DNA from: Ophelia neglecta
Lineage: Eukaryota
Assembly: GCA_965285935.1 (NCBI GenBank)
Contig: OZ260662.1
Location: 65,162,001-65,226,000 of the forward strand
Length of the DNA stretch: 64,000 nt
Reading direction: 5' to 3'
In this document: positions 515 to 44,524 of the stretch, in pieces
How positions within the stretch are numbered: position 1 is the stretch's first letter
How the letters are laid out: every line of letters begins with the position of its first letter
Made by a program: the position numbers and the translations under genes
Notes under the pieces: generated by a model
What the model was told of the DNA's origin: nothing
Database searches by the model: none
The model's input: the letters and a program-made list of their open reading frames with translations, nothing else

Positions 515-637
515 CTGAGTCCTTGCCATGCGGATGGCATCAGCGGTGTTGGTGGTACCGTATCTATACTGAATTGCATCCACGCGATCTCTAACATCTG
601 CTCGGTTCTCCGAACCAACGTTCAAATCGAACTCTAC
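515..637 (-). CDS. Gene A exon: VWA2 (VEFDLN...[18 protein letters not shown])
   Basis: TTNTADA motif shared with VWA2 of B and C; phase 0-0; gene continues beyond the window. Confidence 0.85.
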
Positions 638-3600
638 CTGTTGATAAACACAGATGTTTGTAGTTAAATAGTAACATAGCTAATATCCAATTCAGTTCGG
701 TAAATATGGAGCAGTCTTTTATTGTCTTTTATTGATCAGCAGGCCTTTAAATTGTCCGGCAAAAGGAGTCAATTCTAGGATAAGCTTACGAATAACGACA
801 ATGTTAACATAAGGTGATAAAACATACCCTGGCCTCGTCATTGAAGGTAACAACAGCTATTTTAGCATTGTCAGGTCCTACATTCACGTTCTCGATTAAG
901 GTATCGAAAAACTTCTTGATTTCGTCAAAGTTTTCTGGTCCGACGGAACCGGAAGAGTCAAAGATGAATACTAAGTCCGCGTCATTCTGACACGCTGGAA
1001 AATTACATATGTTCTTTTGCACATTTTCAAACAGTGTTCATCGTTTGGAAACTATATTTTAAAGACATATTGATATATGTTTATATAAAAATTGAATTAA
1101 TCTTTACCAGCGACGGCCTCACAAGCAGCAGCCACCAGTTGTTGTTCGATCATTTCTAGGGCGTCGAAACTCTCCACGTTGAAGACATAATCCAGGTTGC
1201 CGATCGGTTCATTGCCAATCGCCACCAGCTCGTCTTGGTTTAATTGATCACCAATACCAATAGCAAACATCAAGATACCTGCTCATTGAAAAATCATTAG
1301 CTTAGGTCAACACTCTCTATAAATACACAATGTTGTTTAAACACCAGTATTTATCAATACTATTATACAAATTTATTTTTTTTTCTCCGCAAGCGAAGAG
1401 TGCATGTAGTGAAATGATATCTAAAAACATGAAAAAAAGAAAAAAAAGAAAATTATAAAAATAATATGCTAAACAAAACAAAGAAAAATGTAGACAATCT
1501 AGAATGGAATACCGAAAAATAATGAGACATAGTCACAAAATTATAACGATGCCACGAGATATGGACATTAGTGGCTACCTTCCCCTAAATAGATTACTTT
1601 CACACATCGAACACCCTCGCATGCACTACAATTCTTGAAAAACCATAACGGTGGCTGGGTTTTAAAATTAATTTTTCATATTAACAAGGACTGCAGGTGA
1701 TGTTAAGTCGGGCACCTCTGTCCCTGGCCTTGTCCGCCTCCTGGACGGTCAGTTCCTGGTCTCGGTTCGACTCCCCGTCAGTGACCACGATGCCGATGTT
1801 AGGGATACCTTGTCTGTCCCCTTTCTCCTCGGTAAACATGATATCGTACATGGTACGTATGCCTCCAGAAGTGTTGGTCATCTGACGGATAAAAACCATC
1901 AGGGTTGCAATTTTATGTACACATATCAATATTTTAATGGTACTTTGTCTACATATGCAAATGATAGTAACAGTTTTTGATACAAACTAGATGGGTCTAC
2001 ATATGCAAATGATAGGAACAGTTTTTGATACAAACTAAATGGAAGTTGTGTTCGTTAATTTCTTGAACTTTTATCTAGATCTCAGAAAATCACAATAAAA
2101 GGTGTGCTTTAAATTTAAATCATTAAACCTTCGTATCCAAGGGGTTAATTTGGGAAGAGGCAAACTGACCTGATCTTTCCATGGGATCAAGTCGATGGCA
2201 TCGGAAATCTCGGCAGCCGTGACGAAGGAATTGAGATGGAATTGAATGGAAGCCTCGTTCCCGTAACTAACCACGCCCACTCTAAGAGACGAATACACAA
2301 ACGCTACTTTAAGTAGGTTCTCCAAAAAAAAATCAAATTTTAACAAAATAATAGTGAGTTTTGTTTACACAAATTAAATAATTGTTGTATTGGCAATTAG
2401 AGCATATAATGTTCCTTCGAACATTGATGTTAGAATATTTTGAAATTCATAGGCCTATAGGGCCCTAAGTACGTTTACAACTATACAGAATGAAGCAATG
2501 ATAGAAAGTTTCACTGAAATGACCTGATTCCGAGGTCTCCGACTTCGAAGGCGTTAACCATTTGCTTGGCAAAATCGAGCACCTTAGGCCAGTTATTAGT
2601 GCCGATGGAGCCGGAGGAGTCGAGGACCAGGACGATGTCTGCCTGGTTACAATCCTCCGGGGCATCGTCCACGGGCGCCTCGTTCACCAGGGAGGGAACT
2701 ACATGGTTAAAAAAATAAAAACACACCCTGTATAGACAAACCACTGGATCTTATAAAGAACTATTAAAATCGGATAATTATTATATTTTAGTTCTATCTT
2801 TTCTTACCGATGGGTAACTAAGAGGGCCATCACCAGGCATGCAACAATCAGCAAAATATACTTGCTGACTACTCAATTATTGGTATTAGGTGAAATTATA
2901 AAGCAAATACAAGGGGCAGACAGAAAAGGGAGCTGGTCACAAAATAATTAAGGGCATTCAAATTCCGGATCCACAAACAAATTGACATATTTTTCACACT
3001 TTTTGTTAATTATCAACTGGTATTCACGTGCAATAGCAAGTACCATATTCTTGTTTCACGGGGAAAAAGTCTTCATTCAGGCGTCATGAAATTTTCCCCT
3101 GCCCCCTACCAGAATAAGTTTTGTCGATATTTTGTCCGCAAAAATATCTAGGTAAAGACTGGCTGACGTCTAGTGAAGGTTTGAAAATAGGCCTACTCTG
3201 AAAGTGGGTCAACTATCAGACTTAAAAAAGCTCCTGGCTATGGTAAGTAGCGGTTTTTGTATTTTTAGAAATCGGATCGATGGCTTTGCGAACAGGTTGT
3301 TGGTTGTTTTACCAATTAAGCCAGGAAACAGGTGACACTCTCGCTAGAGCCTTCAGTTAAGACTTTATCAGAATGTACATTATTTTTGGCTAGTAGTGCA
3401 ACATTTTGATTCATGTTTTATCAGTTTATTCTTATTATCATCACAATCGTAATGTGTTTATATCATTTGTGGATTGGCAAAGTGGATTTCATGAAATAAA
3501 GTGTGCCGAGTTTTCAGTTCTGGTGATTTGTACAGCCAGTCAAGTGTCTGTGGTATTAGAAATGGTTATTACATTTCGTAGTCAAAGTCAGCAAAAGTTA

Positions 3601-6161
3601 GCCCCCGAAGTTAAGATATGATACTGGAAGAAACAAATCCACCAGGTCAACATTCTGAAGAAACAATCTGGTTAGAAAAAAACGAATATACAAAATTTGA
3701 CCTTGACATGTCAAAGAAATAATCTGGGCTAATATTGGGGAGAAAAATAATTTGAACAATGACGTTATTCTAATGCATTTTTGGGTCTCATTGTTCCACC
3801 GCACAAACATGCAGGATTATTTCAGGATAATTATATGGGAGTTACTGTTGACTATCTGACCGGTGCTAATGGCCGATTACAGCTGGAGGTAGTGTAGTTC
3901 ATGGATAATTGTAAATAAAACGCTCTGGCATTTATGCACTATGTATAATTGTAGTGCAAATGTAGGCATCTGAATTCTGAAATATTGGGTAACTTTTCTT
4001 AAAGTGACAAATGAGTTTAATAATTTGTCTAGTTTCTAGGACATTAATCAGGGTATGTATAGTCAAGTCAGTTACACCGGCCAGTTTTCTCTTTTCTCCT
4101 GACGGAAAAGTAGAGATGTATGGGCACATCATACAAAGTGTTAAGGGGGCACTTGTGATCAATTACCAACATTTAATTAATGTTGCGTCAGAACCAAATG
4201 TAATATTAAAAAGGACAACTGATTGTTGAGTACATAGAATTGACTGTTTATATATGCATAGTGCGGAAGAGTCGAAATCCACTTGGGAGTCATGATTATG
4301 TTAATCCTTACGCAAGCATCTACTAACAATTTACCACATTTTCGGCTAGGGGGATGTTAAACTGCGCTAGCCTTATATCAGGTTAATTCTTATGTGAAGC
4401 TAAAATTATAAGATTGCATGCTTGGCATTATATAATCACTTTTCATATATATATACAGTAAATGAGGCTGGCTATTGTTTTGGCTCCATCAAAGGTTACA
4501 AGTGAAAGATCTTTATTATAATCATGTGTGAACCGTAATGTTCAAGTCCAACTTAAATGATATTAAATACAAAGCAGTTAACTGGTGGAATAACATTGCT
4601 ATTTACTCAACCAAAATAGAAAAAACGTCCATCACTGGAATTTAGAACATTTTGTCAATTGTGTAAGATGCTTATTCAGGGATTTATGTTGGGATTGTTT
4701 TCGGTGAACAGAGATTGATCACCTGACGTAAGTCTCAAGTCTTTTAGAACTCAAGTTGAGGTTAAGTCCGGAAACAAACTCTGGCTTTCGCAGAATTTCT
4801 GGAAGTCTCACATTCCGGTGAAAGACAGGAAGGTATACAGAAGCAATAAGTACTTGCTGACTTGACCCAAAAACTTTCCTTCCTGTGCGAACACCATCCT
4901 TGATTCTACGTTGATTGCCTCACGGGCCGAATAGGGTCAGTTCATTCAAAGACAGCCAACCGTATGTTATTATGCAATTCGCAGTCATATTCACATTTAG
5001 ATATTACTTGTCTCTAATATTAATGTCCGATATGTTTCCAACTACCACAGCACACAAAATAGTACTTGGATAGTTTACAGAGAAGAAGTTCTATTTACAC
5101 CAACGTGACGCTGAGAGCAAAGTTTAAATCCTTTAAGCCGACGCCGAATTAAAGAACACGTTTTTAAATGATGAGCCAGAACAGTGTTAGCGGAGTATAG
5201 GCTCCCATGCTTTCTAAAACACTATATACTTAGTTAGCCTTCTACAGGTAGACGGAACACATGAACACCTTTATTGGGAATATTTTTTTTGAAAAAGAGT
5301 CCTTAACCCTACGGGTCTTTTCACAGGGTTTAAGACCCCATTCACTATGTAAGTAAAGAAATAAAAGTAAGTTTCTTTACTCGAATTGGGTTCAAATTAT
5401 TGACATAAGGGCAATAACATCTTTTTTCTTTTCATTTTTATGAAAATAGAGGGGTTTGAATGCTTCATTAGGAGTCGTGACCCCTGAGAAATGTACTTTA
5501 GGTTTTTCGGCTTCATTTCAAAATATTCCCGTTAAAAGTTTTCATGTATTATGTCTATTTGCAAAAGGCCAGCTTATTAACAACTTGTCAAAATTGTTGC
5601 CCATTACATCATGAAAGCATGGGAAACTACTCCCATAAGTAAACTGATTGGCCTGTCGGGGCCAATTCAAACATAATCGAAACGACATGATTGGTTAATG
5701 ACTTAAATCCAAAATAGGCTTTTCGTCATAGTGAGGCAATCCCAAATTCAGTTAATTTATTCGGCTATGTGGCAATAAATAATTGGCGAATTGATGGGTA
5801 TTAATATATTTGATCAACTATACTTATGTTTCCATTTAAAAATGCATTTTAAGAATTACAACATAGAATTGTGTTATGAAGATATATAATATGCTCATGA
5901 TTAAAAAGTGTGAAGGGAATTTTATATCGTACATTGAAGCACACGCCCGCAGAAAAAAGTTTATAAGACACAGTTTAACATGAAACATAGATTATCAATT
6001 GGCAATTTATGAGATATATGTGTAAAGTTACCTTGTCTTTTCTGTCTGTTGAGTTGGATTACCCTGTCGGTCAGCCTTCCAACTGGGTTGCATTTAACCA
6101 CGACCAGTAGGCACAAAGCTACCAAAGCCGCACCCCTGAACACTACTCGACACGCCGCCAT
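515..6161 (-). CDS. Gene A (3'-truncated by window edge): secreted VWA/EGF multidomain protein paralogue; visible part = signal peptide, furin-site propeptide, VWA1, first half of VWA2. join(6161..6032,2698..2524,2281..2170,1881..1716,1278..1108,994..828,637..515,...)
   Basis: Seven GT-AG-bounded exons join in frame. MIDAS DSSGS...TNT...TDG in VWA1 and DSSGS...TTNT in VWA2. Colinear with genes B and C. Confidence 0.88.
828..994 (-). CDS. Gene A exon: start of VWA2 (CQNDADLVFIFDSSGSVG...NDEAR)
   Basis: MIDAS DxSxS; phase 1-0. Confidence 0.9.
1108..1278 (-). CDS. Gene A exon: end of VWA1 (GILMFAIGIGDQLNQDEL...LVAAACEAVA)
   Basis: Not in ORF track; translated by hand; phase 1-1; closing Cys. 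Confidence 0.88.
1716..1881 (-). CDS. Gene A exon: VWA1 (MTNTSGGIR...GDR...IVVTDGES...)
   Basis: MIDAS Thr and TDG motifs; phase 0-1. Confidence 0.88.
1947..2042. repeat. 48-bp tandem duplication (intronic)
   Basis: gtctacatatgcaaatgatag(t/g)aacagtttttgatacaaacta(g/a)atgg x2. Confidence 0.9.
2170..2281 (-). CDS. Gene A exon: VWA1 (RVGVVSYGNEASIQFHLN...WKDQ)
   Basis: Typical VWA strand B/C motif; phase 2-0. Confidence 0.9.
2524..2698 (-). CDS. Gene A exon: acidic linker + start of VWA1 ([18 protein letters not shown]...)
   Basis: MIDAS DxSxS; AG/GT bounded; phase 1-2. Confidence 0.9.
5192..5633. mobile_element. Foldback/MITE-like element with long imperfect inverted repeats, in gene A intron
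   Basis: Left arm taggctcccatgctttc...acatgaacacctttattgggaatatttt matches the reverse complement of the right arm (tagtttcccatgctttc...acatgaaaacttttaacgggaatatttt); no ORF. Confidence 0.65.
6032..6161 (-). CDS. Gene A exon: signal peptide + propeptide MAACRVVFRGAALVALCLLVVVKCNPVGRLTDRVIQLNRQKRQ
   Basis: Hydrophobic core and RQKR furin site. AG acceptor at 6179-6180, phase-1 GT donor. Same layout as the first coding exons of B and C. Confidence 0.85.
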
Positions 6162-8199: not shown

Positions 8200-9062
8200 T
8201 CATTATTATTATTAATATGTACAATTTATTTTGCGCTTATTCCATAGTATGCTCATGAGCGCATTACAATACAATATGGTATGACTATAGAGAATAACAA
8301 TAAATTAAACATGAACTAGGCTGATACTAAGAAGATAATGGTAAAATAAGGATTTAAAAGAAATGATTAAAAGTGTCTAAATATTATACTAAATCAATCG
8401 TAGGCAATAGTAAAAAAGAGTGTTTTTTTAACTTTTTCTTAAAAACGTCCATCGATTAAGTATTCCGCAAATCAGGGGGGAGTGAGTTCAAGAGCCTTTG
8501 TGCAGTAAAATAAAATGCACGTTCACCGTAAGCTTTTGTATCGCACATGGGAACATCGAGGATCAACTTATCGGATGATCTAAGACAACGACTTGGTCTA
8601 TATGGCTGGATCAGATCACGCAGGTATGCTGGAGCTGTACCAGCGAGACATTTATGCACAAGAAGACACACCTTGTACTCAACCCGGAACTGAACTGGAA
8701 GCCAATGGAGCTGATAGAGGATTGGAGTGATGTTCTCTCTTCTTCCAACCTGCATCATAACCCTTGCTGCAGCATTTTGAATTCGCTGAAGCCGATCGGT
8801 TTTTGACTGGGGCAGCCCTAGAAGAAGGGAGTACAAATTGTCAACACGTGAGGTGACGTAAGCATGAATTAGGCTGCACTTCTTTATAGAGACTGATTGT
8901 TCGCGAGGAGACAAGATACGAACTAAACCATTCCAATGCAGTGCCTGACACTCCAATCTGATTTGACAAGCGATACAGCAACAACCTGTGATCAACAGTG
9001 TCAAAAGCAGCAGACAGATCCAAAAGGCAGAGAAGAACAATCATGCGCTTGGAAGTTGTCAA
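8200..9062 (-). mobile_element. L2-clade LINE 3' fragment (decayed ORF2 reverse transcriptase + 3' UTR + (TAA)n tail)
   Basis: [13 protein letters not shown]...[14 protein letters not shown] and LQRIQNAAAR...ITPILYQLHWLPVQFRVEYK...LRS...YGERAF; frameshift and internal deletion; 3' stem tgcgct...agcgca followed by TAA repeats. Confidence 0.88.
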
Positions 9063-11838: not shown

Positions 11839-12407
11839 TCATTGGCAGAGTTGGTCGAGGATTTGGTCGGCTACTGTCTGCAGCTCAGCCTCGCTCGGAA
11901 GTTGGAAGGTGTTATCGCTATCCGGGTCACTAGCTATTTCATTAACTTCACCCATGTCCATCCTGTTACCTATGCCGACGACCATCAATCGAATATTTTC
12001 ATTTTTAGCATTGTCTGCTTCAGTCATGGTCTCGGAACGTTTTATATTACTCCGGCCATCAGTCATAACAACAGCAACATTTTTAATGGTAGGCCTATCA
12101 CCGGCCGAGCTGGTAAATAGGTCAGTGCGCATACTCGCTAGACCACCCGCTGTATAGGTTCCATAAATGGTCATATCCTGTTTAAACGCGATAGCATTCA
12201 AAACTTCTAATTGCTCACTGTATGTGTTGAGCTGAAACTCCACTTTAGCAGAGCTCTGGAAAGTCACGACACCCACTCGTGTTCTTCCACCCACAAAATT
12301 TAGGCCCATGATGATTTTTTCAGTAAGCATTTGAGCCAACTCAAAACGCAATGCTACACTTCCAGAAGCGTCTAGCACGAATGCGATGTCCAGGGAATTC
12401 GTGCATC
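11839..12407 (-). CDS. Gene B terminal exon: VWA5, ends LCQ-stop
   Basis: DASGS/T/TDG; 569 nt, same length as the terminal coding exon of gene C. Confidence 0.93.
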
Positions 12408-15400
12408 CTGGAAGTGAAAGAAAATTTAAATGAACGTTTGATATTTAAGACAACGACGTCTATGTGGATCCCCAAGCAAACAATAGGCCTATTCATTGCG
12501 GCTGAGGCGGTGACGCGGATAATTCTCCACCACAGACTAACACTGTGACACCATACATGCATTAACAACGTGAAGAAACAGCCCTTGCAAATTTTGCTTA
12601 AGTAAATGCATCTGAAATCACCATATCAAAGGTTCTATTAATTAATTTGAAAGATCAGTCATATTACAACTACTCACGACGCTCGCAGTTAACTCCAGTT
12701 CTGTCCCCAGTGCATTTGCATATGTAGTGTCTCATGGCTGGAATGCATTGGCCAGCATTTAAACACGGGTTACTGCGGCACTCATCAAAATCTAGAAACC
12801 AAAACGGGTAGACATGTAAATAATAATGATAGCTCTAGTCCCGAATGCTAATATGTGTATCCAAGACATACAGGAGGTAACGTTTTCATCTCTATAGGTA
12901 ACACGTGAATAGTTGATAAGGTAAATATGGAAAAATGATATATGACAGGCAAAGAATGAATAAGAACTGATCAAAATATATACCCACCATCACATATGGC
13001 ATCAGTTATGTTTGGCAATAGTTTAGGCACGTCGGAATATTTTGCCACTGGGAAAATGTTGCTTTTAACCGGTCTTGATGCCATCCCGCGGATCTCCAGA
13101 TTGTTGATGTCATTCTCAATGCTGATCACTATCAAATGGATCCCCGCTGCCCTCGTTTTGATAGCGTCCGGTAGGGTCTTTTCCCGGTCCACAGTGGAGG
13201 CCCCGTCTGTGATCACAACAGCAAAATTGGGCACTTTGTCTCTGTCGCCATTTGATGAACTGAAAAAATTCCGTAGCATTCGCATTGCGGAGGCCGTATT
13301 TGTTCGACCTCTGGTGTATGGGATGGCGTTTGTAGCAGCCATGACATCTTCTTTTAGTTTGTACTTGTTCAAAGGGATCCTAATCTGTGCGTCGTCAGCA
13401 AAAGTAATGACACCGACCCTGACTTTGTCATTGACCATCTCCAAAGACCTGATTATATTACTTACAAATTCCATGACCATTCTGAAACGATGCTCTCTTA
13501 TACTTCCAGAGGAATCGATCACAAAGGCGATATCTGCATCACCAGGGCAATCTGAGAAGGAGAACAAAATGTGTATGAATATGAATGAATCTAGCTTAGG
13601 CCTTACTGTTACCTGGTCAATCAAGACTGCGATTTATTTTCGCAGGTAACATCTTACTTTGCTGACAATCCACCCCAGTGTAATCATCAGTGCATTGACA
13701 TTCGTAGCTGTTGATCTTGTCGAAGCACTGCCCACCATTGAGACAAGGGTTACGCTTGCAGTTGTCATTTTCTGAAAAAGTCGTGCATTTTCTATTGTAA
13801 CAGTCTATTTTTGTACAGACTCACAATTGGACCGGCCACATATTGTTAGAAACATTTCTTTAAATGTATCTTCAATATAATGCTCTTTGAACTAAGTTTG
13901 GATTTATCTACCGTGCTAATTTGATTTTTAATTTTTTTTTAAATCTTGTTTAGCCTAAAGAGAGCTCACGTATTGCTCACTTACCATTACAAACATTGGT
14001 GATAACAGCGCTTGTGAGCTCGTTCAGTCTCGAGGTGTCCATGGCCTCTATAAAATTCATGTTATCGGGGTCAGAAGTGATCCCTTTCAGTTCCCGACGG
14101 TTGTACTCACTTCCCACTTTAATACCTACCGCCAAAAGGGTAATACCGGCTTCGTGGGCAAGAATTGCCTCCTAAAAGGAACAATATTGACAGGTTGAGA
14201 ACGGGCGGCTTTAGAGCATATTGCAGCTCACTAGATGAATATTTAAATCAGAAAATATTGATCCCCTAGATAAGCGAAACATTTCATTTTTCTTCCTCAA
14301 TATTAAGGCAGAATGCCACGTATCAAACGGACCATGAATGGTATTTTGTTATTCGTATTTTTGCCTTATGTAAAAAATAATCAAATACAACTTCTGTGCA
14401 ATGTTGTTCTAACCTGGAATGTGTTCTGCCTGTTTGAGGACCGACCGTCTGTTAGTAGTATACCAATATTGGGATATTCCGGACGATCGCCGTTATCCAA
14501 CGTAAACATGTTTTGGCGGATGTAGCGTAGGGCTGCTGCCGTGTTAGTGACCCCGTTCTTGCTGGGATAACTTATGGCATTCACTATTTCTGATTTATTC
14601 GCATACTTATTCAGGTGGAATTCGAGGTTTACACTATTACTGGAAAAAAAGAACAGATACTCCTATGCCTTCAGTACTTCTAACGTTACAGTCTGCTATC
14701 TATCGATACACTACTCATGATAACATAATAGCTTTTAAAATAACGAAGTGCAAAAGTGCATGCAATATTTTAATATACATTGCATACCATATCGCACGAT
14801 GACATGTTTACCATGATCAATGGATGTGGTTTATGTTCTAGCGTATACCTACCTGTAGGTGAGCAGTCCGACGCGAGTTTTGCCCTCGGGTCCTGTCGCT
14901 AGTCCCCGTGCTATTTCCTTCACAAATTGCATTACATCATAGTGTCCCTGTATTCCCATACTGGCCGAGGCGTCGACAGCTATCACAACGTCTGCTGTTT
15001 TGCTACATGCTAAGAATAGAAAACACTTCAACCTCAAATAACCATGATAACAATTCCACTATTTATAACAGTCTACCTTACAAAATCAATGCGTTATAGA
15101 TCAATCTGACCCAAAATTGAGTGTTTTTGTCAAGCAGGGAGAAAAGAGTCGAAACAATCGAGCATCTTCTATAAGCGAACGTGGTAACCATCCGTTGTTT
15201 CCTGTATTGTACACTTAGAGAGAGGAGCTGGGAATTCTTACTTATTTCACAGTTGATTCCGGCGAAGCCCGGGGGACACATACACTCGTAGTAGTTGACA
15301 AGGTTGACACAGGTTCCTAGGTTGTAGCAAGGGTTACTCGAACACTCGTTGGGTTCTACATAATAAGCAGAAAAGGGTAAAAATGTGGAATGTGGAATAA

Positions 15401-22974: not shown

Positions 22975-23470
22975 CCCCTACCCCACTGGAGTTTACACTT
23001 AACCTATCACTATGCCAAACCCCAACACCAACCCAACTCCTATCCAAACACTCACCCTAACACTACCACTACCCCAACAATCACCCTAACCCCTGCCCCA
23101 ACATTCACACTATCGCCTACCCCAACTCTCATCCTCAGATCTACTCCAACACACACCCAAACCAATACCTCAACACTCACCCCTACCACTACCCAAATTC
23201 ACACCCAAACCCCTATCTCAACTCTAACCCTTACGCCAATACATACCTCAATCACTACCCCCCACCCCCCACCCCACCCCCAACCCCAACACATACCCCA
23301 ACACTCACCCCAACCACTACCCCAACTTTCAACCTAACCCCTGCCCCAGCGCTCACCCCAAAACTTACCCCAACCCTCACCCTAACCCCTGCGCCAACAC
23401 TCACCTTAGCTCCCGCTACAACATTCACCACTTCCGACCACAACACTCACCCTAACCCCTACCCTAAAGT
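22975..23470. repeat. Degenerate C-rich hexamer array (CCCTAA/CCCCAA/ACACTC), telomere-repeat-like
   Basis: 6-bp periodicity with several perfect CCCTAA units and strong strand asymmetry. Confidence 0.8.
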
Positions 23471-23574: not shown

Positions 23575-23705
23575 GATAGGCTTTGGTAAAAACTCGTTGG
23601 CGATGGTGGAAAAATTGACGATATTAGGGGATGGTGAAAAATGGTAGGCGATGGTAAAGAATATTACCTAAGTACGTGGTAGATGATGGTGATAAATTGG
23701 TATAA
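23575..23705. repeat. Short degenerate tandem repeat (about TGGTAGGCGATGGTGAAAA)
   Basis: About 5 imperfect copies of gatggt(g/a)aaaa. Confidence 0.55.
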
Positions 23706-27894: not shown

Positions 27895-28330
27895 CACAGG
27901 ACCAGCATTGAATACAAAATTGGCCTTATAGTTTATAAGGCAGTTCGAAAGCACATTTTTGATCTTGGCATCACTATTGTCCCGCACGCGCTTTGAGAAC
28001 TGGTTATAAGGGCGCCCTCTCTGACCAAGCAGTACGGGGATCAGGCCATTTCTATTGCTGGTCCAAGGCTTTGGACCTCTACAGCGGTGACTTTGAGATC
28101 ACTTGTATCATAAGCCTAAATGTATTCAAACATCAACGCAAAGTATGCTTGGTTTAAAAGTATTGTTGTTCTGAAGTAAAGAAACGCTTACAATGAATTT
28201 TAATTTCAAAGTTTTATTATTTATGCATTGTTACCTGTAAACTATACCATCTCCTATGTTGTAATGATTGCAACGCGCTAGCGAGCATTCACAGAGAGCC
28301 GGCGCGATATAAGGTTCTTATAATTCATTA
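27895..28330 (+). mobile_element. Old L2-clade LINE 3' remnant
   Basis: Translates to SIEYKIGLIVYKA (27904) and TKQYGDQAISIAGPRLWTS (28024), matching the L2 ORF2 C-terminus; cgcgct...gcgcg stem near 28275-28306. Confidence 0.65.
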
Positions 28331-32518: not shown

Positions 32519-33087
32519 TCACTGACAAAGTCGATCTAGGACTTTGGTGGCGGTACTGTCGATCATGCTTTCGTCCTCCATGATAAACGCATGCTGTGTA
32601 TCGGGTTCACTGGCTATGCCGTTAACCTCTGACCTGTCCACGTGACCATTTTTTCCAATTCCCACAGCCAACATAGTAATTCCCGCTTGCTTGGCCTGTT
32701 GAGCAGACGGCAACGTGGCGTAGCGGTTAATGTTTGAATAACCGTCCGTGATCACAATACCGAAGTTTGGATCACCAGTCCGGTCACCATTGGAGCTTGT
32801 GAACATGTTGAATCTCATTTCGTCGATGCCGCTGGCGGTGTTAGTACGTCCCTGCTCCATTGTGTAGGCGATAGCGTTCAAAACACCTTGTCTATCGGTG
32901 TATTTGTTAAGATGAAATCTGACGTTAGGCTCATCGCTGTATGTTACAACCCCGACACGGGTCCTGCCACCAGCGAAATTGAGTCCCTCCACAATACGTC
33001 GGCTGACGCGCATGGCCAGATCAAAAGTGGTCTCCACGGAACCGGAAGCGTCCAGAATAAATACCACATCACTACGACGACTACAAC
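32519..33087 (-). CDS. Gene C terminal exon: VWA5, ends LCQ-stop
   Basis: DASGS/RTNT/TDG; [15 protein letters not shown] shared with gene B VWA5. Confidence 0.93.
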
Positions 33088-36000
33088 CTGTAACATAAAC
33101 AGTATGTAATGCAAAAAGTACTCAAGAGTCAATAGGAGAAACAACTCAGCGGTCCTCATTCGACCGTTTCTATTACTTTTTAACTGCAATGGTCATAGGC
33201 ATGACCTATGTGTGCCTCACTTTACGCATGCGCGAATTTAGTCAATGCTAAAACCTTGTTATAATATCTGGTGTGAAAACTGCAGCGGAACATGACAACA
33301 CATGAAAGCGTGTAAAGTGACACAGGAATCAACGTAAAAAATAAATTATCTGATTCTCAAGAAAAAGCGGTTATAACTAGCTAATAAACATATTATCATT
33401 GAAACCAAAAACGATAGACAAGTATTTTCTGAGTGACGAACTTAAATTGTAACGATGGTGGGTAATGCAGCAGATCGAGTGTAGCTCACGGCTGGTTTAG
33501 TTCCCCTGCCTAAAACCAGCCGTGTGAGGGTGCGTTTTTGTTTAAAGATTATAAGGACATTCAGGCGCTCGTTTTCCACATAAAATATCAGTTTTGCTAC
33601 AAGGAAGTGTGTTTTCGGTTCTTGTTGCATTTCGATTTAAGTGCATAATTTTGGAAAGTCTAACCTATTCTTAAATCCAAGGTTACGGCAAAATGGGGCA
33701 ATCACTATAATGGGCAAACTGCAACTCCCGAGTGGACTAATATTCAACATTGGATTTTGAAAAGGTTTTAAAAGAAGGTCTTCCAGTTTACAAACGGACG
33801 GACAGACGCAAGGTTCTCGTCAATGATATACGTGAGAAAGCAAAGCTGGGATAGGGCAAGGGTCTAAGAGTTGGTCAGTGTCATATCTTTGGTTAAGACA
33901 AGATCGGTTCTCAATATGCCACTTTGTATGAAGGCTGTACAGTATCATAATGATGCTATGAATTCATGAAAGATGCGGTAAATTCACTACTTATTATCAC
34001 GCTACTACTTCTATGGTGTTTTTGAGGAATGCTAGTGACTGTGACAGAACTTACGTCGATCACAGCTGACTCCGGTATACTCATCTCGACAGAGACAGAT
34101 GTACTGCCCTAACCCATCAACACACCGTCCGCCATTACGACAGGGATTACTCGAACACTCGTCCACATCTGCAGAGAAATATTCGAAATTGTTAAAAGCA
34201 TAAATGTAATCACCTAGTATTGAGTTTATAAAAATAACAGATTAAAAATTCATTTTGCATATAAACAATTAAATGGCTAACAGAAATTTCACCTACCATC
34301 GCACATAGCGTCTACTAGTCGGTCGGTCATGGTGGCAAGATCCGAAAATGAATTGACGTTGAACATATTATATTCGTCTGGGTCGCTAGCTATTCCTTTG
34401 ATCTCAAGACTAGGTTTTTCCGGAAGTACTGTCACGGCCATGACATGAATACCGTCCGTCCGCGCCGCAATGGCCTCTGGTATAGTATTGGCTGCGTTGA
34501 TGTTTGATTGGCCGTCGGTGATAACAGCTGCGTAGTTGGGAACATTCGGTCTGTCGCCGGAAGTAGGCTGGAACATCTGCGTTCGCATCATTTCCAGCGC
34601 GTCCGCTGTATTTGTTCTTCCTCTACTAAACTTCACTTTTTCTATCGCTTGTAAGACATCCTCTTTCCTGCATTGTCAGAAATAAAGATATGTTAATATA
34701 TAGATGAGATGCATGATTTCACATATTCAATCAAATACAACTTTCATTTTAGGGGAACCATTTTATTAGAAATTTCTGTGTCAAAACAAATTTTCCGAAA
34801 ACAAACGAGCAAAAGAAAATCTTAATTTCTCAGCGTGCGTTTGTACAATTTTTCTAAAAGGAATTTTCATAATCATCAGAATAGTATCTTTTTTTTTAAA
34901 TCTTCATTTTACTCTGAGCTGACTTTGAAAGTCGCTTTACTGAACCGTTAAGAGTTAATACGCATGACTGCATTATTATGACCGATAACAACCACTCAAC
35001 AGCCCCTCCATGAGAAGCCCAAGTGTTATTGTTGCACACCGGGCAAAGTATTGGAACTTGCTGGAAAGAGGAAAACCCTGGATGCCAATAGATGAAAAAT
35101 TTCGCACACCGTACCAAGTCTTCGTACCTTGCCCATAACGACGTTTTAATATGAAAACTGGTCCATTTTACCAGAAAACTTGAATAGATTTCATTTCAAA
35201 TTTCCAAAACACTAACATCGGTGTGATGTTGGCAAACATTTTATGTGTAATTAATATGTCAATTGAATCGCTCGTTTCGTGGCAAACCATGCAACAATGA
35301 CGTGGGGGGAGGGAGGTTTCCATCCATAACTGTTATTAACTGGGTAATGCAGTCTCCAGGAAACTTAATAAATAAATTTCAACTAAGAGCGCTAGAACTC
35401 GACCTCTCACCTGAAGAAGGTGTTGAGATTGAACTCCACCTGGGCGTAGTCTCCGTATGTTACCATGCCAACACGAGCTCTATCTTCTCTCACCTCCAGC
35501 TGTCTGGTAATATTAGCAATGTACTGGAGAACCGTTCTGAACCGACTCTCCCTGATGCTGCCACTGCTGTCCACGACAAATATAATATCAGCTTGACCAT
35601 CACAGCCTAAAAACACAGGAAAAATTATACAGTTATAGTAACATAATTAATAATTTAGCAGACATCTTGCATGCATTTATGTACATTTGGAATACTAGAT
35701 TTAATTTTATTTAATTTGTCTTATTATGTGCAGCGTTTTAAGATATAAGGTGAAAATATGCACCAATTTCGAAATTTCGGTAGGCATTAGGCTATAACTT
35801 ATACTTTAAGAGATTGGGAGAAAAAATGCGTGAGAATAACCAATGTTGTGAACGCGTTGTGTAAGTATTTAGACAGATGACAATCCAGTCACTTATATCA
35901 TTCTCCGATTTAGAGGATTTGGTTTAGTAAATAAACCACTACATTTCTCGATCTACCGTAACATACTACTGACATTGGGAGGCATTTATAATACTTTTGA

Positions 36001-39000
36001 AAAAATCAATCCACTTTTATAATAACGTGTGTCTGTGCATGTGAGTATTGACTAGATAATCACCTCTTATTAAAGTGGATAGAGGGTCTGACTAGATCGA
36101 TATTTGACATTGTGTTTATAATCTAGGGGTCGCTTTGAATGCCTAGTTGGGTTTTAAAAATAGGTCTACGGGCATATGCAGGGGTTGTCAATGCCTTTTA
36201 TATGGCTCTATGGCACATAGCAGACGTGACTGTCGTCAGGCCCTATAAAGACTTGGTCAACAAACAAAGCAGGGAGAGCGATTTGATGGCCATTGATACA
36301 TAAAACTCAGCGACCCAGACATCGGAATCGTGATACCGTCAAAGAGCCAGCAATGGACATTGACAACATTTGGCACACCTTTGGCTGTGGATGTCTGCTG
36401 CCTTATATCGTCCCTAGACTATAATAGTTGGGGTATTAAGTGTACTAATGTATCTGAAAACAAAACGAGACAAGGGTATCGAAACACCAGCGTGGGAGGA
36501 ATCGGGACCGTCGTGCCTCGCCAATGATACATTTATTTTTTGACAGAAAATGGCGCCTGTAAATATGTTTTGAACTATATTCAGCCTATGTTTTCTTTGG
36601 AAATAAATTTGACTACTACAGTAAATGGATCAGTAATATCATTAATCAAGATACCATAAAGAAATCACATGAGGTAACACATAATTATACAACAAAACGA
36701 GTTGATTTCTTTGTGGAAGATGCCAACATTTACCCATGTGTATTCCCACAAGCCAATTTAAAAATTCCTAGTGCCTATGTATGGAGAATATCGAAAAAAA
36801 TTGCCCTCAAACTGTTAACGTATAGTAATTCTCAGGTTCGCGTCCCCTACTTAGCAGCTTCCTCCCCGCAGGTTTTTTTTCCTCAGTTAGCATTAACATT
36901 TTTTAAAAAACTCCCGAAAATACATATTGCCCGGAATTAATTTCAATCAGGGATTTGAGGTTATAAAAAAGTTAGCCGTCACGAATAAAGATTTAAAGGT
37001 GTCTGAAAGAACATTTCCTTTTACATTGAAATGGGAAGATTAAATAAGAAATGGCTTGAAATAAAATATAAACACATTCGCCACTTTGTAATGGGGATCC
37101 TATAAATGAGAAACTCTAGAAAATTACAAAAATTACCCCTCCCTCATCCCTCAGCGGCTTCACTCTGTATAAGCTCTCCTCGTGCTTTTTCAAAGCACCA
37201 AACTTGTTTAAGCTATGTTTTTAAGCTGCCAGTCGATGGGGATTCCCTACCTAACCACTTTATTACCTTAAATTTGTCTATACCAACTATATTTAACCAT
37301 TTATACCAAGAGTTTGCCTGTGTAGATACTAGAGGAACCTACCTCTTTGACAGTTGTTGCCGGTCCTGCCCGACGGGCACAAACACGTGTAGCCGTTTAT
37401 TTGATCTACACACGTTCCACCACCCTGGCACGGGTTGGACTCGCACTCATCGACACCTGAAAGTCAAAAACACTGCCACTTTAGATAGACCTGCCTACAA
37501 CACTGTAAACACTGTCACAAGTGGCCAAGTGGCAGGTACCCTGCCCACAGAGGTATTTAGTTGACAGCTAGCCTGCCCACAGTAGTATCTGACTGACAGC
37601 TACCCTGCCCCCAGTGGTATAAAGTTACAGTTCCTCTACTTAGCCGAGGAGCGCATAAAGCTCTGCCACAGTGAGCAGTAAAATACGCCCCAGGTCAAAG
37701 TAACCGAACCCACCATCCATTTGTTGCAGTTTCAGAGAAACATTATTGTATTCCGTTCAAGGTTTGATATGATAAAGTAATTTGAGCCCTGATGCCTCTG
37801 TACTTTGATAGATGCACCATTAACAAATTTGCTACAAGTGGTTTTTGTTCGTTTATATTATTTTACTGATATTCATGGTTAACCCCTGTGATAAAGTATA
37901 GTAGAGCAGAGATACTGACTGTCGCATATGGCAGTGACGATGTTGTCGGAGATGGTGTGGAGGTCCTGGAAGGATTGGACGTTTAGTACATTTTTGTCGT
38001 CTGGGTCACTGGCGATACCCCTCAGCTCTCGCTGACCGTGCGCACTCTGAGATAAAGGAATTTTACGTTAAAATTTAGCATATATTAAAACGTGTAATAT
38101 TTAAATAATATTTCTTGCATGGGTCAATTTTCATGCCTTTCCTTGAAGTAGTTTAACTTTGTTAAATTTCTCAACTGTTGTTGTTTGATTCAATGAACCA
38201 CATTATAAAGCTTGACAATAGATCAGTCGCGATAAATAAACATGAGATACATTTGGCGCTGAATTCCAGGCAATAAACGTAAAAGGAGGCCTATTTCATT
38301 CTCCCTGGAACTTGTCCACTTACGGCCAATTTCCAAAATATATACCTCAGTTACATTGATCAATGTGAAATAACGCTGCTATTTGAAAAGAAGTTGATGG
38401 GTGCAATAATTGCTATTTAAAGTTATTTCTAAGTTCATGATATTTTTCCAGTGGAGCTGGTATAACCTTCATGTTGATGCCGACGGCAAGCATGTCAATA
38501 CCCTCTGTCCTTGTCCGCACGGCCTCGTCAAACGTCTGGTCTCGATCGTTGCTCTCTCCGTCTGTGATCAGCACTCCCACGTTACGCACAAAAGGTCTAA
38601 AATACGAAATGGAAAACGAGGTGCTACATTTCAGGAATCTGCTCGCTCTTTTTGCAATTCTTGTCAATTCCTAATCCAACTCACGGTGCGTTATTTATTA
38701 TCACATCGCATTTATACGATTATCTATAGGTCGAACTTATAATAAGGTATACACATTTCGAATTTTTTTCTTTGACAAGGTTTAAAGCCTTACCTCTCCC
38801 CTTTAATATTCTGAAACATGGTATCTCTCATGTTCTTAATGGCGGCGGCAGTATTAGTTGTCCCTGCCTTATACGGAAAGCTTATGGCATCGACAATCTA
38901 CATAATAAATATAAAACACCAGTATTTAAGTGGTCATGAATGAAATATATATATATATATATATGTATGCATATCACAAAATGTATGCCCATAAACAAAA

Positions 39001-42000
39001 TTATTTTAACACATTCATGGAACCTTTTTTTTTAGGCCTACCTTAGTTTTTGTCTGATAAGAACTGAGATCAAACTTCACTTCCACCTCGTTGGCAAAAG
39101 TCTCCAGCCCCACCAGGGTGTGCTTAGGCCCGATGTTAAGAGCTTTGACGATAGACTTGGTAAAGTTGAGCACCTCGTAGTAGTTATCCCGTCCGATACT
39201 CCCAGACGAGTCCACAGCAAAAACAACATCTGCAGGTTTACATCCTACAGAAATAAAACATATATTTTAGAAAGTTAGAACTCAGGCTGTTGCGTTGAAA
39301 TATTTTTTATCAAGTAAGCAAATATAACGTTACTAGACCTGTCCAGGAATTAAAGGTACTCTAGCGAAACCGGTGCCACATACATTATTTCTTGGCAATA
39401 AACTAGAATCAAGGAATGTCCGAAAAACTCTTTGTCATGTGTTTACAACAGTGGGCTTCTAACTTAATGTTACAAATATAAAAAAAACAGGAGATGCCTG
39501 GACACAACCGACAACACTCTTATTAAAAAATAATGACTTATAACTATACATATTAAATAAAATAATATAACTCGTCTAGGCATATGACTTTAAAACCAAG
39601 CACAATGAACTTGTCAATACAACATTGCAATAACAAATTTTAATTAAAACTACAGAAATGACCAGCAACAATGTGGGAAATACTACTACAGTGCAACGGA
39701 GCCAGATGTCCATATTAGGCCTATCTGGGGGATTTGTTGTTAAGCTTAAGACCACTGATAAACAACGTAGGAAAACAGCACTGAAGAAAGACTAACTAGC
39801 CTTCTAATACTGAGAAAATGTACGAGTATAAGTTAGAAGAGATAAAGATGTAAATGAAATGTAGTCTTCACAAGGATACCCTGGAGAACAAGATAATTGT
39901 TTATCATCGGACACGTGTTCTTATAAAATGCTAACATGATTCATTGAGGAGAGGACCATAGGAGAAAAAGTTGACAACAAGAATAAGGAGGCATTGTATT
40001 CATTTTTGTTATTACCTTCTGCATCAGTTTGTGTTTGACAAGTGGATAGTATAGTTTTAGCACTATTAGATTTTTTTGTCCCACCAGCGGTACGTAAATT
40101 GTGTGATGAAAAAATAGCTTTCTTCTACATATGTAACTGTGATATACATGCATACTGCATAGTTTGCAGTATCTTCGCAAAACTGTGTTGTGATAATTAT
40201 TCTTATTGTTGTAATATAACCAACGCAATTTCTTTTATTCAATGATATTAAAACTTTTAAAATATATCGTATTGGATACTCACCGAATTCACAGTTAACC
40301 CCGGCGAAGCCCTTTGTACATTGGCAGGTGTACTTGTTAAAGCCGTTTATGCAGGTACCTTGATTGCGGCATGGGTTACTGTCACACTCGTCATCAACTA
40401 CAAGGAAGAGAAACTCAATGTTTTTCCCAATAATCATATAGGCTTTATTTTGACTTTGTGGGAGTTCAAGGACGTACTTTATTGTTATTCTATCGATCAG
40501 TTTTTACTGAAAAATAACCTGTCGTTTGGAGCTGTTTAGAGTATAGGATTATGATATACTCTCGGTTTTTTGTTTTGCTTTCATTAAATGTGTCAAATTA
40601 TTAACGATGGAAATTCTACGTGAATCGAACATTTCAAAGCATATTTCAGCTGGTGCAAAATTAGAATAGCTTCTCAATGATATATAGCACAAACACCTGT
40701 GTGCTCAACGATCGATTCATTGAACAAATATTATATAATTCAAGCCAGGCTATATTTATTGGTGTAGGCATGAACCAAATTTTCCATTTTAATCTTGTTT
40801 TAATTGAGCGTCATGTATCACAATTAACTGTCTGGTCACATGCCAGATATTACATCAGAAACCTATATTAAAAGTCACATTCTCAATACAACAATATACA
40901 ACAATATGTGTTACCTGTTTACAACGATCATTTTGCCAACTTAAATATAATAGATTCCAAAATACTTCCAAATTATACTGCATATGCATGAAGACCATTC
41001 CCATTATAACTATTCATGTGATTAATCACATATGATCGATAAAGGCATCTACTCACGGTCACAGAGTATGGCTTTCAGGTCATCTTTTATTCTCCCGATG
41101 GCGTCAAAGCTCTCGATATTGAAGACGTTTAGTGAGTCCGGGTCAGAAGCCATTTCATTCAGCTCCACCTTATTGATCCAACTGCCCACACTAATCGACA
41201 CTACTGTGATCCCCGCTTCTCGCGTCAACATCGACTCCTCAAGGGTTTTCTCAAAGTTATTAGAACCACCATCAGTAAGAACAATGCCAATGTTTTTCAG
41301 ATGGGGTTGGTCGCCGTTTTCTGGGACGAACACTTGAGTACGGAGGACTCTCAAAGCATCCGCAGTGTTTGTCGTCCCTCGAGAATATTTTACAGCATCT
41401 ATGCCCTCTTTAATCTGCAATCTGCTCTCAAATGCATTCAAATGGAATTCGACCTGCGCGTTGTCACTAAAAGTCACCAAAGCTACATTGGATTGGTCCA
41501 AATCAACGTTAAGGTTGTCGACCATTGTTTTTAGAAAGTCCTTCATCTTCTCGAAGTTTTCTACACGAACGCTACCGGAAGCGTCGAGAACGAATGCGAT
41601 ATCGGCCAAATTGGAACAATCTGAAAAGATTATAAAATAGAATGATCTACTGTTGTTTATGTGACGAATTGTAAATTTAAAAAATAATCATATGCTATAT
41701 ACTGGATAAAAATTCAGTGATCCAGAAATGTTATATTGTCTTCCGCGGGTAATACTATAAATAAAATTAAAAAGATCACTGCCCCGCCTCCAAGTTGTAT
41801 TTATCCGAACAGCTATCTGTTAAAGTAGTTACTTTTTTGTAAATATGGTTAAAGAATCTATTTAATTACTAATGAAACCATATGATAAAACGTGCCCATT
41901 AAATTGTACTTACCTACAGGAATATCACAAGCCGCAGTTACCAGGTTACTCAAGATAGAATTTAACGTATTAAACCCTTCCACGTGAAATTTATAGGATG

Positions 42001-44524
42001 TGTTTTTAGCTAGTGTTAAAAGTTCTTTTTCATTGGTTTCGTTGCCAATGCCTATAGAAAATATAGTGATTCCTTTGGCGAGAGCTGCAATTGACACATT
42101 CTTTATATTTTCTGTTTCTCTGTTGCTAGCGCCATCCGTAACGACGACGGCGATATCCGGTGCCGTGACACGGGCACCGTTCGGTTTTGTGAACATAAAT
42201 TCGGTAGCATACCGTACGGCACCGCTTGTGTTCGTTTCTTCATCTTTCCAGCGCATAAATTTCAAGGCTTGAATGATCTCTTGTCGTGTGTAATGTCTAT
42301 TTAGATGAAATCCGGTGTGATTTTCGTTGCGGACGTCCACCTCTGCGCCGTTTCCGTATATGAGAACTCCCACGCGCGTGGCGTGGTAGCCCACGTCCAG
42401 CGCGTTTACCATGGCAGTCACAAACGACTTGATCTTGCCCCAGTTGTCTTCACCCACACTTCCGCTCGAATCCAATATGAATACAATGTCTGATTTAGAG
42501 CAATCTTGACCTGTAATCAGAAACAAAATACATGTGCTAATTCATTGTCAAATCCAAAAGTGGAAGTAACACATGGCTCCTTACTATACGAATGACTCTA
42601 GGCTTATAGGAAGGGTTTTTCATGTACATATCTCATATAAACATAACAAAATATCACATCTGATATGGGAGTTTATATCTGTGATGCCACCCCCACCACC
42701 TATCGCAAATTCCACTAATCGAAAATTTTTCATTTAATGGTTTCGCTTTGTCTGATGACGTTAAGTTTTTTTTTTTCTGATGTGCACTGACTGACGCTTC
42801 GAACGGGGGTTAGGGAGAGTTACATAGAGGTTGTTTAGGATTGTATCTGCAGCACCACTACACCGAAGCTCAGTACGAAATGCAGTAACCAATAATTGTA
42901 ATTGCCGTATATTAGTACGTTAAGATGTGCAGGGATAGGCAAGTGAGTGGGTATTCTTTAGATTTGAGTCAAGTCTTGAGTTGTCGTCCTTAGACCTGAA
43001 TTCGAATGCGAAATACTAATTTAGGGGCCTATCTTGTTAGATATGTTGGGACGAATTGCCATGATTTGCTAATGCGAATGTTGACCTATTTCTAGATGGT
43101 CGAGAATAATGGTGGAAGACGATGTAACACGCATATTAATGATGTATTTCATTGTTTTACCCTGGGGTTGTTTTCATAGTAGGGAAGCTAAGTCATACGT
43201 TTTGAGCGTGAAACTTATACTGACATGGATAAATTTGGCCCGACGCCAGACACACAATATTTTTCGATACTGACAAGGTTATGTTTTCAAGCCCAGTACG
43301 TATGTTTTTACTGTCCCATTTTATGCACCGGCCCCATTTTTTAATATCGAACAAAGTGCCACCTGCTTTAAAGACAAATCAAATGTCTGTGTACATACAT
43401 TCGTTATATTAATGCAGTAAAAGATATATAACTACCTGACGTGGCTTCTGGTTTCAATTGTGTTTTTGAAGAAAATTGCAACCACTATAATTCTATGTGA
43501 TTTGGGTTGTTGTGCAAAGAGAGTTATATAAAAGACATATTTCAGAGTGACAACAACAGGTCAAATCGATTTCAAATATCAACTATCATTTACTCTCAAA
43601 TAAAGCAATTGACGAGAAACAGATTATATGTTAGAAGTGAGACTATTCGGACCTGGGAAGACACCTGGCAATGGATACAGGATACATATTGTATTATTTT
43701 GTGCCGTCTGCCTCGGGCGTTGCCATCCCAGGTTGCCATAATCACAAACAGTACAGGCGCCTATACGGACCGAGTCAATGGATGATAGTCTCGGCACTTG
43801 CCAGCTTAATTGCAAAGTGTTTCTCGCTCGAGTTAAGACCATTGTGCTCAGTGTGCTCTTATTAGATGTCCCAACTACAAATCTTAGTGTTGAGCAAAAA
43901 TGAACTATTATGGATATACTGACCACCACAAAACATACAATGTTTTTTTTGGCGTTTTCTATTCCTCAAAAGTATTTCTAGATAGATCCCCCGGTCACTA
44001 TTGATTAGATATATAGTTATGTACAATAAGACACATAGCTGTTTTATTGTTAATTACATTCACGGTCACTTATTGAAGCATAATTTCATGTCTTCTTAGT
44101 TCTGGCTGTGTTACTTTTAATCCACGCCCGTCGACCACAGCACATTGCATGGTATGAATTAACAAACCAAAAGACGATCATTCTCATCTTATCACTTAAA
44201 AATAATAAAATCAATAACCAAGAAACAAATGTCGCTATCAAATAGGGTAAATTTTTTGCATTCTTTTGAACGCAATTCCTCATTCAACTAGTCAGTAATT
44301 CGAAATAAGTATTACCAGGATAATAAGCCTTATTGACAACCATAAAACAATATAAATTGGAATAATAAGACATCCTTTTAGCACAGTAAATAGCACAAGG
44401 AATGCTTACCGGTAACTCGTTTCACTCGATTCAGCGAGTGGTGTTGTGGATGGGACAACGAGGCACATTGGCTCGCAATTGCCAAAGTGCCAAGAATAAA
44501 GAACTTCAGTAAGATATCCATCAT
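32519..44524 (-). CDS. Gene C (complete CDS, about 1105 aa): secreted SP-pro-VWA-VWA-EGF-VWA-EGF-VWA-EGF-VWA protein. join(44524..44410,42510..41914,41620..41057,40397..40284,39244..39042,38897..38794,38596..38467,38046..37920,37456..37343,35606..35411,34667..34297,34168..34055,33087..32519)
   Basis: 13 GT-AG exons sum to 3318 nt, in frame with no internal stop; domain-for-domain colinear with gene B. Confidence 0.9.
34055..34168 (-). CDS. Gene C exon: EGF3 ([38 protein letters not shown])
   Basis: 114-nt phase 1-1 EGF exon. Confidence 0.92.
34297..34667 (-). CDS. Gene C exon: remainder of VWA4
   Basis: RTNT, TDG, ASDPD, closing Cys; phase 2-1. Confidence 0.92.
35411..35606 (-). CDS. Gene C exon: start of VWA4 ([23 protein letters not shown]...)
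   Basis: MIDAS; phase 1-2. Confidence 0.9.
37343..37456 (-). CDS. Gene C exon: EGF2 ([37 protein letters not shown])
   Basis: 114-nt phase 1-1 EGF exon. Confidence 0.92.
37538..37620. repeat. 32-bp tandem repeat, about 2.5 copies (intronic)
   Basis: cctgcccacag(a/t)(g/a)gtat...tgacagcta recurs. Confidence 0.75.
37920..38046 (-). CDS. Gene C exon: end of VWA3 ([16 protein letters not shown]...AICD)
   Basis: Translated by hand; phase 0-1. Confidence 0.88.
38467..38596 (-). CDS. Gene C exon: VWA3 ([17 protein letters not shown]...AVGINMK)
   Basis: TDG motif; phase 2-0. Confidence 0.88.
38794..38897 (-). CDS. Gene C exon: VWA3 ([34 protein letters not shown])
   Basis: Translated by hand; phase 0-2. 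Confidence 0.88.
39042..39244 (-). CDS. Gene C exon: start of VWA3 ([15 protein letters not shown]...)
   Basis: MIDAS; phase 1-0. Confidence 0.9.
40284..40397 (-). CDS. Gene C exon: EGF1 ([37 protein letters not shown])
   Basis: 114-nt phase 1-1 EGF exon. Confidence 0.92.
41057..41620 (-). CDS. Gene C exon: entire VWA2
   Basis: 564-nt phase 1-1 exon; DASGS/TTNT/TDG. Confidence 0.93.
41914..42510 (-). CDS. Gene C exon: entire VWA1
   Basis: 597-nt phase 1-1 exon; DSSGS/TNT/TDG. Confidence 0.93.
44410..44524 (-). CDS. Gene C exon: signal peptide + propeptide [38 protein letters not shown]
   Basis: Translated by hand in a different frame from the ORF track; hydrophobic core, RVKR furin site; ATG directly after an AG acceptor; phase-1 GTAAG donor. 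Confidence 0.85.

Follow-up and report, generated by a model that had tools for sequence, protein, structure and literature searches.

Matrilins (matrilin-1 to -4) are secreted adaptors of the extracellular matrix that combine von Willebrand factor A (VWA) and epidermal growth factor (EGF) domains, the VWA domains having cysteines at their ends and an adhesion site dependent on metal ions (MIDAS), and they owe their multivalency to a coiled coil (PMC4294422). Another matrix protein, collagen VI alpha3, carries an N-terminal array of VWA domains arranged like beads on a string (PMC3919171, PMC3220584), and in the mussel the secreted lophotrochozoan VWA protein PTMP1, which has no oligomerisation domain, binds both mussel and mammalian collagens (PMC4754843). 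Here we describe a tandem cluster of four genes in the annelid Ophelia neglecta, three of which lie wholly or partly in the window that was analysed, a stretch of 64 kb of the 762-Mb genome (contig OZ260662.1, positions 65162001-65226000; GC content ~38%, zero Ns). Coordinates are counted below from the first letter of this window, negative numbers lying before it. The four products share the order VWA1-VWA2-EGF1-VWA3-EGF2-VWA4-EGF3-VWA5 and, judged by their sequences, the genes belong to an old annelid family of predicted secreted modular proteins that is already present in the databases without description.

The layout sets these genes apart from each of the described systems. In matrilins, a C-terminal coiled coil that makes trimers or tetramers follows one or two VWA domains, whereas the present genes encode five, with single EGF spacers and without a coiled coil. 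The linkage of VWA and EGF is shared, but the open reading frames (ORFs) end one residue past the last cysteine of VWA5, and a matrilin identity was rejected. A Gly-X-Y triple helix, C-terminal domains and a lack of EGF spacers characterise collagen VI, and none of these applies to the genes found here; since there is no Gly-X-Y region and the Pfam scans of the exons of all four genes gave no collagen match, collagen VI and the FACIT collagens (XII, XIV) were rejected as well. The separation from matrilins and collagens had been drawn, on these same features, in a preliminary description made from the letters of the window alone, and we maintain it. PTMP1 differs in that it has no more than two VWA domains, lacks EGF modules and is part of the byssus, a structure absent from annelids. 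AMACO/VWA2 and the 'matrilin-like' proteins of slug glue, like the proteins described here, are secreted, carry VWA and EGF domains and have no collagen helices. The order in AMACO/VWA2 is VWA-(Cys-rich/EGF)-VWA-VWA-EGF-EGF. An AMACO/VWA2 identity was rejected on the order V-V-E-V-E-V-E-V found here, a VWA2-like protein of the sturgeon (Acipenser) being read as V-E-V-V with the same domain models.

Four tandem genes with a fixed domain layout

All long stop-free segments with VWA and EGF signatures were found on the minus strand, and Pfam VWA (E down to 5e-41) and EGF matches were obtained on exons of the four genes, which in order of transcription are C, B, A and D. Small exons were located by cross-comparing segments between paralogues. 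Junctions inside domains were placed by alignment to uninterrupted paralogous domains and those at domain borders by splice-site score and phase; the GC-AG intron of gene B, a small extra exon in VWA2 of gene D and the donors of exon 1 and VWA1 of gene A were set by hand. Splicing gave four uninterrupted ORFs with 68 introns, 67 of them GT-AG and one GC-AG. The only non-GT donor (G/GCAAGT) belongs to the first VWA1 intron of gene B (19185-19070).

The preliminary description had reported three co-oriented paralogues, with a fixed architecture of 1109 amino acids (aa) in B and 1105 aa in C that A matched up to the edge of the window. Splicing recovered exactly these two lengths and the common strand, and gene A does extend past the edge, leaving the window after exon 637-515 and continuing for ~9.1 kb beyond its start. 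The number of tandem copies had to be raised to four, since inspection of the adjacent DNA (40 kb upstream of the window) provided both the rest of gene A and a fourth co-oriented paralogue, D, 3.2 kb beyond A. The first exon of gene D (-12345..-12432) is tentative: it encodes a signal peptide and lacks the RxKR site seen in the other genes, and a search for an RxKR-type signal exon for this gene found none. As for the sequence signatures described for individual domain positions, TTNTADA in VWA2, those of VWA4 (in B and C) and of VWA5, and the LC[QNS]-stop ending are present, and only the one of VWA1 needed correction, to WKD-xx-TNTSG, with two residues between its halves and not one.

All four products start with a signal peptide, assigned by eye, and a short propeptide that in C, B and A ends in a furin-type RxKR site (see the table for the motifs), and are followed by the eight domains, whose borders all fall at phase-1 introns. 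Translation stops one residue past the last cysteine of VWA5, with the endings LCQ in C and B, LCN in A and LCS in D. No stretch of more than 60 aa was found outside the eight domains in any of the four genes, which leaves no place for a Gly-X-Y region or a coiled coil. The MIDAS set DxSxS...T...D is complete in 20 of 20 VWA domains, each of them with a cysteine at both ends. In the description of matrilin VWA domains this combination is the mark of domains that bind ligands in a metal-dependent way and are clamped by a disulfide between their ends (PMC4294422). The mature chains have ~117 kDa, an isoelectric point (pI) of 4.4-4.9 and 2-7 N-glycosylation sequons. They contain exactly 28 cysteines (5x2 + 3x6), every one inside a domain, so that none is spare for intermolecular bonds. 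EGF3 of genes B and C matches the full calcium-binding consensus and most of the other EGF modules match it partly. Neither mucin-like, dihydroxyphenylalanine (DOPA)-type or Gly/Tyr-rich blocks nor any other low-complexity blocks were seen in the four sequences.

An old annelid family duplicated as whole genes

Relatives were sought with a HMMER scan of 1.84 billion representatives (VWA5 of gene C as query, profile-free) and with a word-indexed search that used the full-length relative P0012 and scored only the 8000 candidates sharing most words. Database and family searches were run exon by exon, with P0012 and P0154 serving as full-length proxies, and the candidates were annotated with domain models made from genes C, B, A and D. 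Twelve database proteins of 1058-1145 aa have exactly the order V-V-E-V-E-V-E-V and end in LC-x (P0012, P0154 and P0155 among them) or shortly past the last cysteine. The family is thus not new to the databases. The suspicion that relatives would be mislabelled was well founded: Capitella teleta CAPTEDRAFT_220507, CAPTEDRAFT_228894 and CAPTEDRAFT_225901 and Dimorphilus gyrociliatus DgyrCDS8533 are all annotated as "hypothetical protein", and metatranscriptome entries of the family as "collagen type VI alpha" or "Mg-chelatase subunit ChlD". These Capitella and Dimorphilus proteins have a signal peptide, often an RxKR or RxRR site, a length of 1089-1139 aa and 35-62% full-length identity to the genes described here. 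Membership in the family is indicated by the common layout and length, by full-length collinearity at 43-62% identity over more than 1050 residues, by the signal peptide as called by eye and by the L-C-x end. Nothing material separates these genes from the Capitella members; the Ophelia copies carry 4-14 extra introns inside their VWA domains.

The MIDAS residues were invariant at all five VWA positions in a 12-protein family alignment. Together with the 20 complete sites of the four genes, this makes the cation-dependent multivalency that had been proposed for them plausible. In the leech Helobdella the related protein is a six-VWA variant and in Owenia the order is V5-E-V-E-V. Outside annelids, the matches among the 8000 scored candidates were below 30% identity and mostly without EGF. 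Furthermore, P0012 and P0014 are encoded by uninterrupted ORFs on Logan contigs of 3.9-4.6 kb, from three runs, with sequence on both flanks. These contigs, which come from other samples and appear to be assembled transcripts, end their ORFs at the same LC-x stop and continue past it. A read-through into collagen or coiled-coil exons, which the preliminary description had named as counter-evidence, is therefore not seen, and these homologues of other samples, at least, lack a tail of either kind.

The four genes are whole-gene duplicates, deeply diverged and yet intact, in agreement with what had been supposed from the window. Paralogues are collinear along their whole length at 43-47% identity, and a tree built from 88 VWA domains groups them by position and not by gene. 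Support from the Shimodaira-Hasegawa-like approximate likelihood-ratio test (SH-aLRT) was 99 for V2, 99 for V3, 97 for V4 and 91 for V5, V1 staying unresolved, and 0 of 200 label shuffles reached the same clustering by position. Domains of the Capitella protein P0079 were nested in the V2, V3 and V4 clades. Since the domains group by position, it was whole genes that were duplicated, and the five-domain layout predates the split from Capitella. In the tree of whole proteins, gene C pairs with CAPTEDRAFT_220507 (SH-aLRT 99; 62% identity over 1086 columns), gene B with P0156 (support 100) and gene A with CAPTEDRAFT_228894 (96), and the tandem array is therefore, at least in part, ancient. A tandem pair exists in Capitella too, where a second, more divergent VWA-rich gene of 1118 aa (KB298780.1, L017:14498-18973) lies downstream of CAPTEDRAFT_228894, 467 nt away and co-oriented with it.

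At least four further loci with the VWA/EGF order are present on the same Ophelia chromosome, at ~60.88, 63.99, 64.08 and 87.98 Mb, the one at 64.08 Mb with six VWA matches of which the first possibly comes from an adjoining gene. A query with VWA5 of gene C gave no further copy adjoining the four-gene cluster, its match count being a lower bound. We also observed VWA exon matches in a regular series, ~1.3 kb apart, at 63409360-63431537 (~1.73 Mb before the window). The chromosome thus carries several clusters of VWA genes, at 60.8, 63.4-64.1, 65.1-65.2 and 87.9 Mb.

All seven phase-1 introns at domain borders are common to the four paralogues and to two Capitella genes (L016:10001-13794 and L017:10001-14031), in which there is about one exon per domain. 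Inside the VWA domains, gene C has four introns, B six, A 12 and D 14. With junctions set by alignment to uninterrupted domains, ~24 of these positions occur in a single paralogue and ~6 are common to subsets of them, a distribution pointing to many intron gains by single paralogues (or to differential losses) along this lineage.

The integrity of gene B could be evaluated with the three sequencing runs found for the organism, all from one sample. In them the stretch of gene B is covered by genomic DNA contigs that cross the introns without splice joints. The exons make up 47% of this stretch and yet held only six of the 40 listed single-base differences between these contigs and the assembly (P=2.6e-5), a figure that covers the listed differences, there being 42 more. 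Four of the six exonic changes are synonymous and two conservative, and none of eight indel sites fell in exons (P=0.007). This pattern of polymorphism is that of purifying selection on gene B.

Proposed function of the encoded proteins

By sequence, the nearest solved chains were collagen VI alpha3 (top PDB match, E=2.3e-98, in four stretches), mussel PTMP1 and the I domain of integrin alpha1. Modelled with AlphaFold2, the Capitella orthologue of gene C (mean predicted local distance difference test score, pLDDT, 84.8; predicted template modelling score, pTM, 0.65) comprised three EGF folds and five VWA folds, the latter confident, and was disordered over its first 38 residues. Foldseek gave PTMP1 as its top match (E=9e-34, 29% identity across two consecutive VWA domains), followed by the I domains of integrins alpha1 and alpha2 (template modelling score, TM, 0.86-0.93), collagen VI alpha3 N2/N5 and von Willebrand factor (vWF) A3. 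The closest solved relatives are collagen-binding VWA domains by sequence and by fold. With collagen-binding domains as the nearest folds, the genes may be read as coding for metal-ion-dependent multivalent matrix adaptors.

We therefore hold, with moderate confidence, that these are secreted modular matrix proteins that would tie collagen or other matrix components together. Architecture, motifs and conservation are observations, and the binding, its ligand, the monomeric state and the tissue are inferences. A convertase would cleave after RxKR and leave a chain that is probably a monomer, free of intermolecular disulfides. The chain could then use as many as five sites that depend on metal ions, with a separate preferred partner for each, to contact acidic residues in collagens or in other molecules of the matrix, and this binding would tie fibrils or networks together non-covalently, the adaptor job done elsewhere by matrilins, by the N-terminal VWA array of collagen VI and by mussel PTMP1. 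Multivalency would come from domain repetition, with five separately conserved sites per chain, and not from oligomerisation by a coiled coil or a triple helix. The EGF modules would act as short spacers, partly stabilised by calcium. The proteins may work in an external secretion or in the matrix of the cuticle, the basement membrane or connective tissue.

Several points weigh against this adaptor role. A complete MIDAS would be compatible with metal-mediated ligand binding and is no proof of it. The monomeric state is deduced from two features, the lack of an oligomerisation module and the lack of spare cysteines, and VWA domains of matrilins do self-associate (PMC4294422). The signal peptides are by-eye calls and the first exon of gene D is tentative and without RxKR. 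None of the three runs obtained in the run search for the organism was an RNA run, and literature searches (accessions of Capitella, Helobdella and Dimorphilus; VWA/EGF/annelid/tube/cement) retrieved no paper on the family. Finally, the top structural match, PTMP1, itself works in an external secretion, the byssus, and the fold does not separate an internal matrix from secreted material.

This last point leads to the alternative that survives best, the one proposed in the preliminary description, namely that the proteins are part of an external secretion (mucus, a burrow or tube lining, or an adhesive) produced by epidermal gland cells, in which they would act as cross-linkers through divalent cations, the paralogues possibly co-assembling. 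We consider this possible, although doubtful. 'Matrilin-like' proteins with VWA and EGF domains are among the main components of the adhesive mucus of slugs and semislugs (PMC11178922), VWA domains are enriched in the tube proteome of a tubeworm (PMC8476170) and PTMP1 belongs to the matrix of the mussel byssus. The predicted products are also secreted, acidic and multivalent, with their 20 intact metal sites, and tandem expansion is typical of secretion genes. However, the lack of mucin-like Ser/Thr/Pro, Gly/Tyr/DOPA-type or other low-complexity blocks is a mild argument against a secretion, and there are no spare cysteines for the disulfide polymers that form gels. Proteins of secretions are often fast-evolving, unlike this family with its strong position-specific conservation, its one-to-one Capitella orthologue at 62% identity and the purifying selection seen in gene B. 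The family or close variants of it are also found in Dimorphilus and the leech, neither of which is known to build tubes, and the literature searches gave no proteomic or expression record for it.

If the adaptor role is retained, it can be carried further, to an ancient annelid family of monomeric heterovalent connectors whose five MIDAS sites are conserved one by one. Every VWA position would then hold its own kind of partner, and networks specific to a tissue would be assembled by the tandem paralogues, one possible task being to organise the collagen lattice of the cuticle, with the family standing in for matrilins and collagen VI. We regard this extension as unlikely.

Still less probable is that the products are soluble humoral factors of the coelomic fluid or blood, acting in clotting, wound plugging or the agglutination of pathogens, with VWA domains that capture the targets. 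VWA domains do act in haemostasis (A1/A3 of vWF) and in complement, both represented among the fold matches, a paper on snail adhesion proteins attributes immune roles to the same classes of domains, and the expansion on one chromosome is compatible with an immune gene family. Against this, the domain scans found neither a lectin, C1q, protease or vWD/TIL module nor any other that serves recognition or an effector function, strict one-to-one orthology and a fixed architecture are unlike the fast-diversifying immune families, and the nearest VWA relatives are collagen-binding ones.

That these genes have no present function, being either duplicates in decay or artefacts of the exon prediction, for which one could invoke the purely genomic runs of the organism, the weak support for exon 1 of gene D and the many paralogue-specific introns inside domains, is hardly credible, and a pseudogene reading was rejected, in view of four spliced ORFs intact over 13-23 exons with canonical splice sites, the preservation of all 20 MIDAS motifs and 28 cysteines, the variants that avoid the exons of gene B and the uninterrupted transcript-like contigs of homologues in other samples.

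The cluster in its surroundings and the meaning of the family

The coordinates of the genes and of the exons inside the window are collected in Table 1.

Table 1. Genes of the VWA/EGF cluster and their exons, in window coordinates (negative numbers precede the window).
Feature	Position	Strand	Exons and remarks	Evidence
Gene C	44524..32519	-	13 exons, 1105 aa, complete	
C exon 1	44410..44524	-	Signal peptide and short propeptide ending RVKR; phase-1 donor	Signal peptide by eye
C VWA1	41914..42510	-	One exon	Pfam VWA E=3.6e-37
C VWA2	41057..41620	-	One exon	Pfam VWA E=5.1e-41
C EGF1	40284..40397	-	One exon	Pfam EGF E=9.8e-9
C VWA3	37920..39244	-	4 exons: 39244-39042, 38897-38794, 38596-38467, 38046-37920	
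C EGF2	37343..37456	-	One exon	Pfam EGF E=1.2e-10
C VWA4	34297..35606	-	2 exons: 35606-35411, 34667-34297	
C EGF3	34055..34168	-	One exon; full calcium-binding EGF consensus	
C VWA5 and stop codon	32519..33087	-	One exon; LCQ-stop	Pfam VWA E=4.3e-38
Gene B	19891..11839	-	15 exons, 1109 aa, complete	
B exon 1	19750..19891	-	Signal peptide and propeptide (RTKR)	Signal peptide by eye
B VWA1	17288..19497	-	3 exons: 19497-19186, 19069-18947, 17431-17288; intron 1 GC-AG	
B VWA2	15761..16875	-	3 exons: 16875-16704, 16456-16229, 15924-15761	Pfam
B EGF1	15242..15355	-	One exon	Pfam
B VWA3	13985..15009	-	3 exons: 15009-14853, 14639-14414, 14171-13985	Pfam
B EGF2	13658..13771	-	One exon	Pfam
B VWA4	12988..13551	-	One exon	Pfam VWA E=2.4e-39
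B EGF3	12678..12791	-	One exon	Pfam
B VWA5 and stop codon	11839..12407	-	One exon; LCQ-stop	Pfam VWA E=3.8e-34
Gene A	6161..-9145	-	21 exons, 1120 aa; ends LCN-stop outside the window	
A, 5' part in the window	1..6161	-	7 of 21 exons	
A exon 1	6161-6032	-	Signal peptide and RQKR	Signal peptide by eye
A VWA1	2698-2524, 2281-2170, 1881-1716, 1278-1108	-	4 exons	
A VWA2, first two exons	994-828, 637-515	-	2 exons	
Gene D	-12345..-24367	-	23 exons, 1096 aa; wholly outside the window	

In the interval between B and A, a pair of overlapping frames on the minus strand (8459-9077) resembles, by a motif, the reverse transcriptase and C-terminal region of a decayed retrotransposon of the long interspersed nuclear element (LINE) type. 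Pfam gave no match on this LINE-like ORF or on the other long ORFs of the window. Two tandem arrays were found outside any recognisable gene. One lies in the intergenic region of C and B (23019-23405) and consists of 15.6 copies of a C/A-rich 24-bp unit, with a Pro/Thr-rich reading on the plus strand. The other, with 19.7 copies of a 15-bp unit (GGGAGCCTGGGCCCA), is located upstream of gene C at 52314-52600. No conserved coding segment was seen on either strand at 44600-64000, the 19 kb upstream of gene C, and the cluster borders a gene-poor stretch on this side.

For years the family has sat in annelid annotations as "hypothetical" or as mislabelled collagen VI, and for annotation neither collagen nor matrilin is a fitting family name. 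The rigid 5+3 layout, the position-specific conservation and the 20 intact metal sites make these genes a clean model for multivalent VWA adaptors that lack an oligomerisation domain. The family also offers concrete candidates for the linker proteins that are still missing in collagenous matrices or secretions of annelids.

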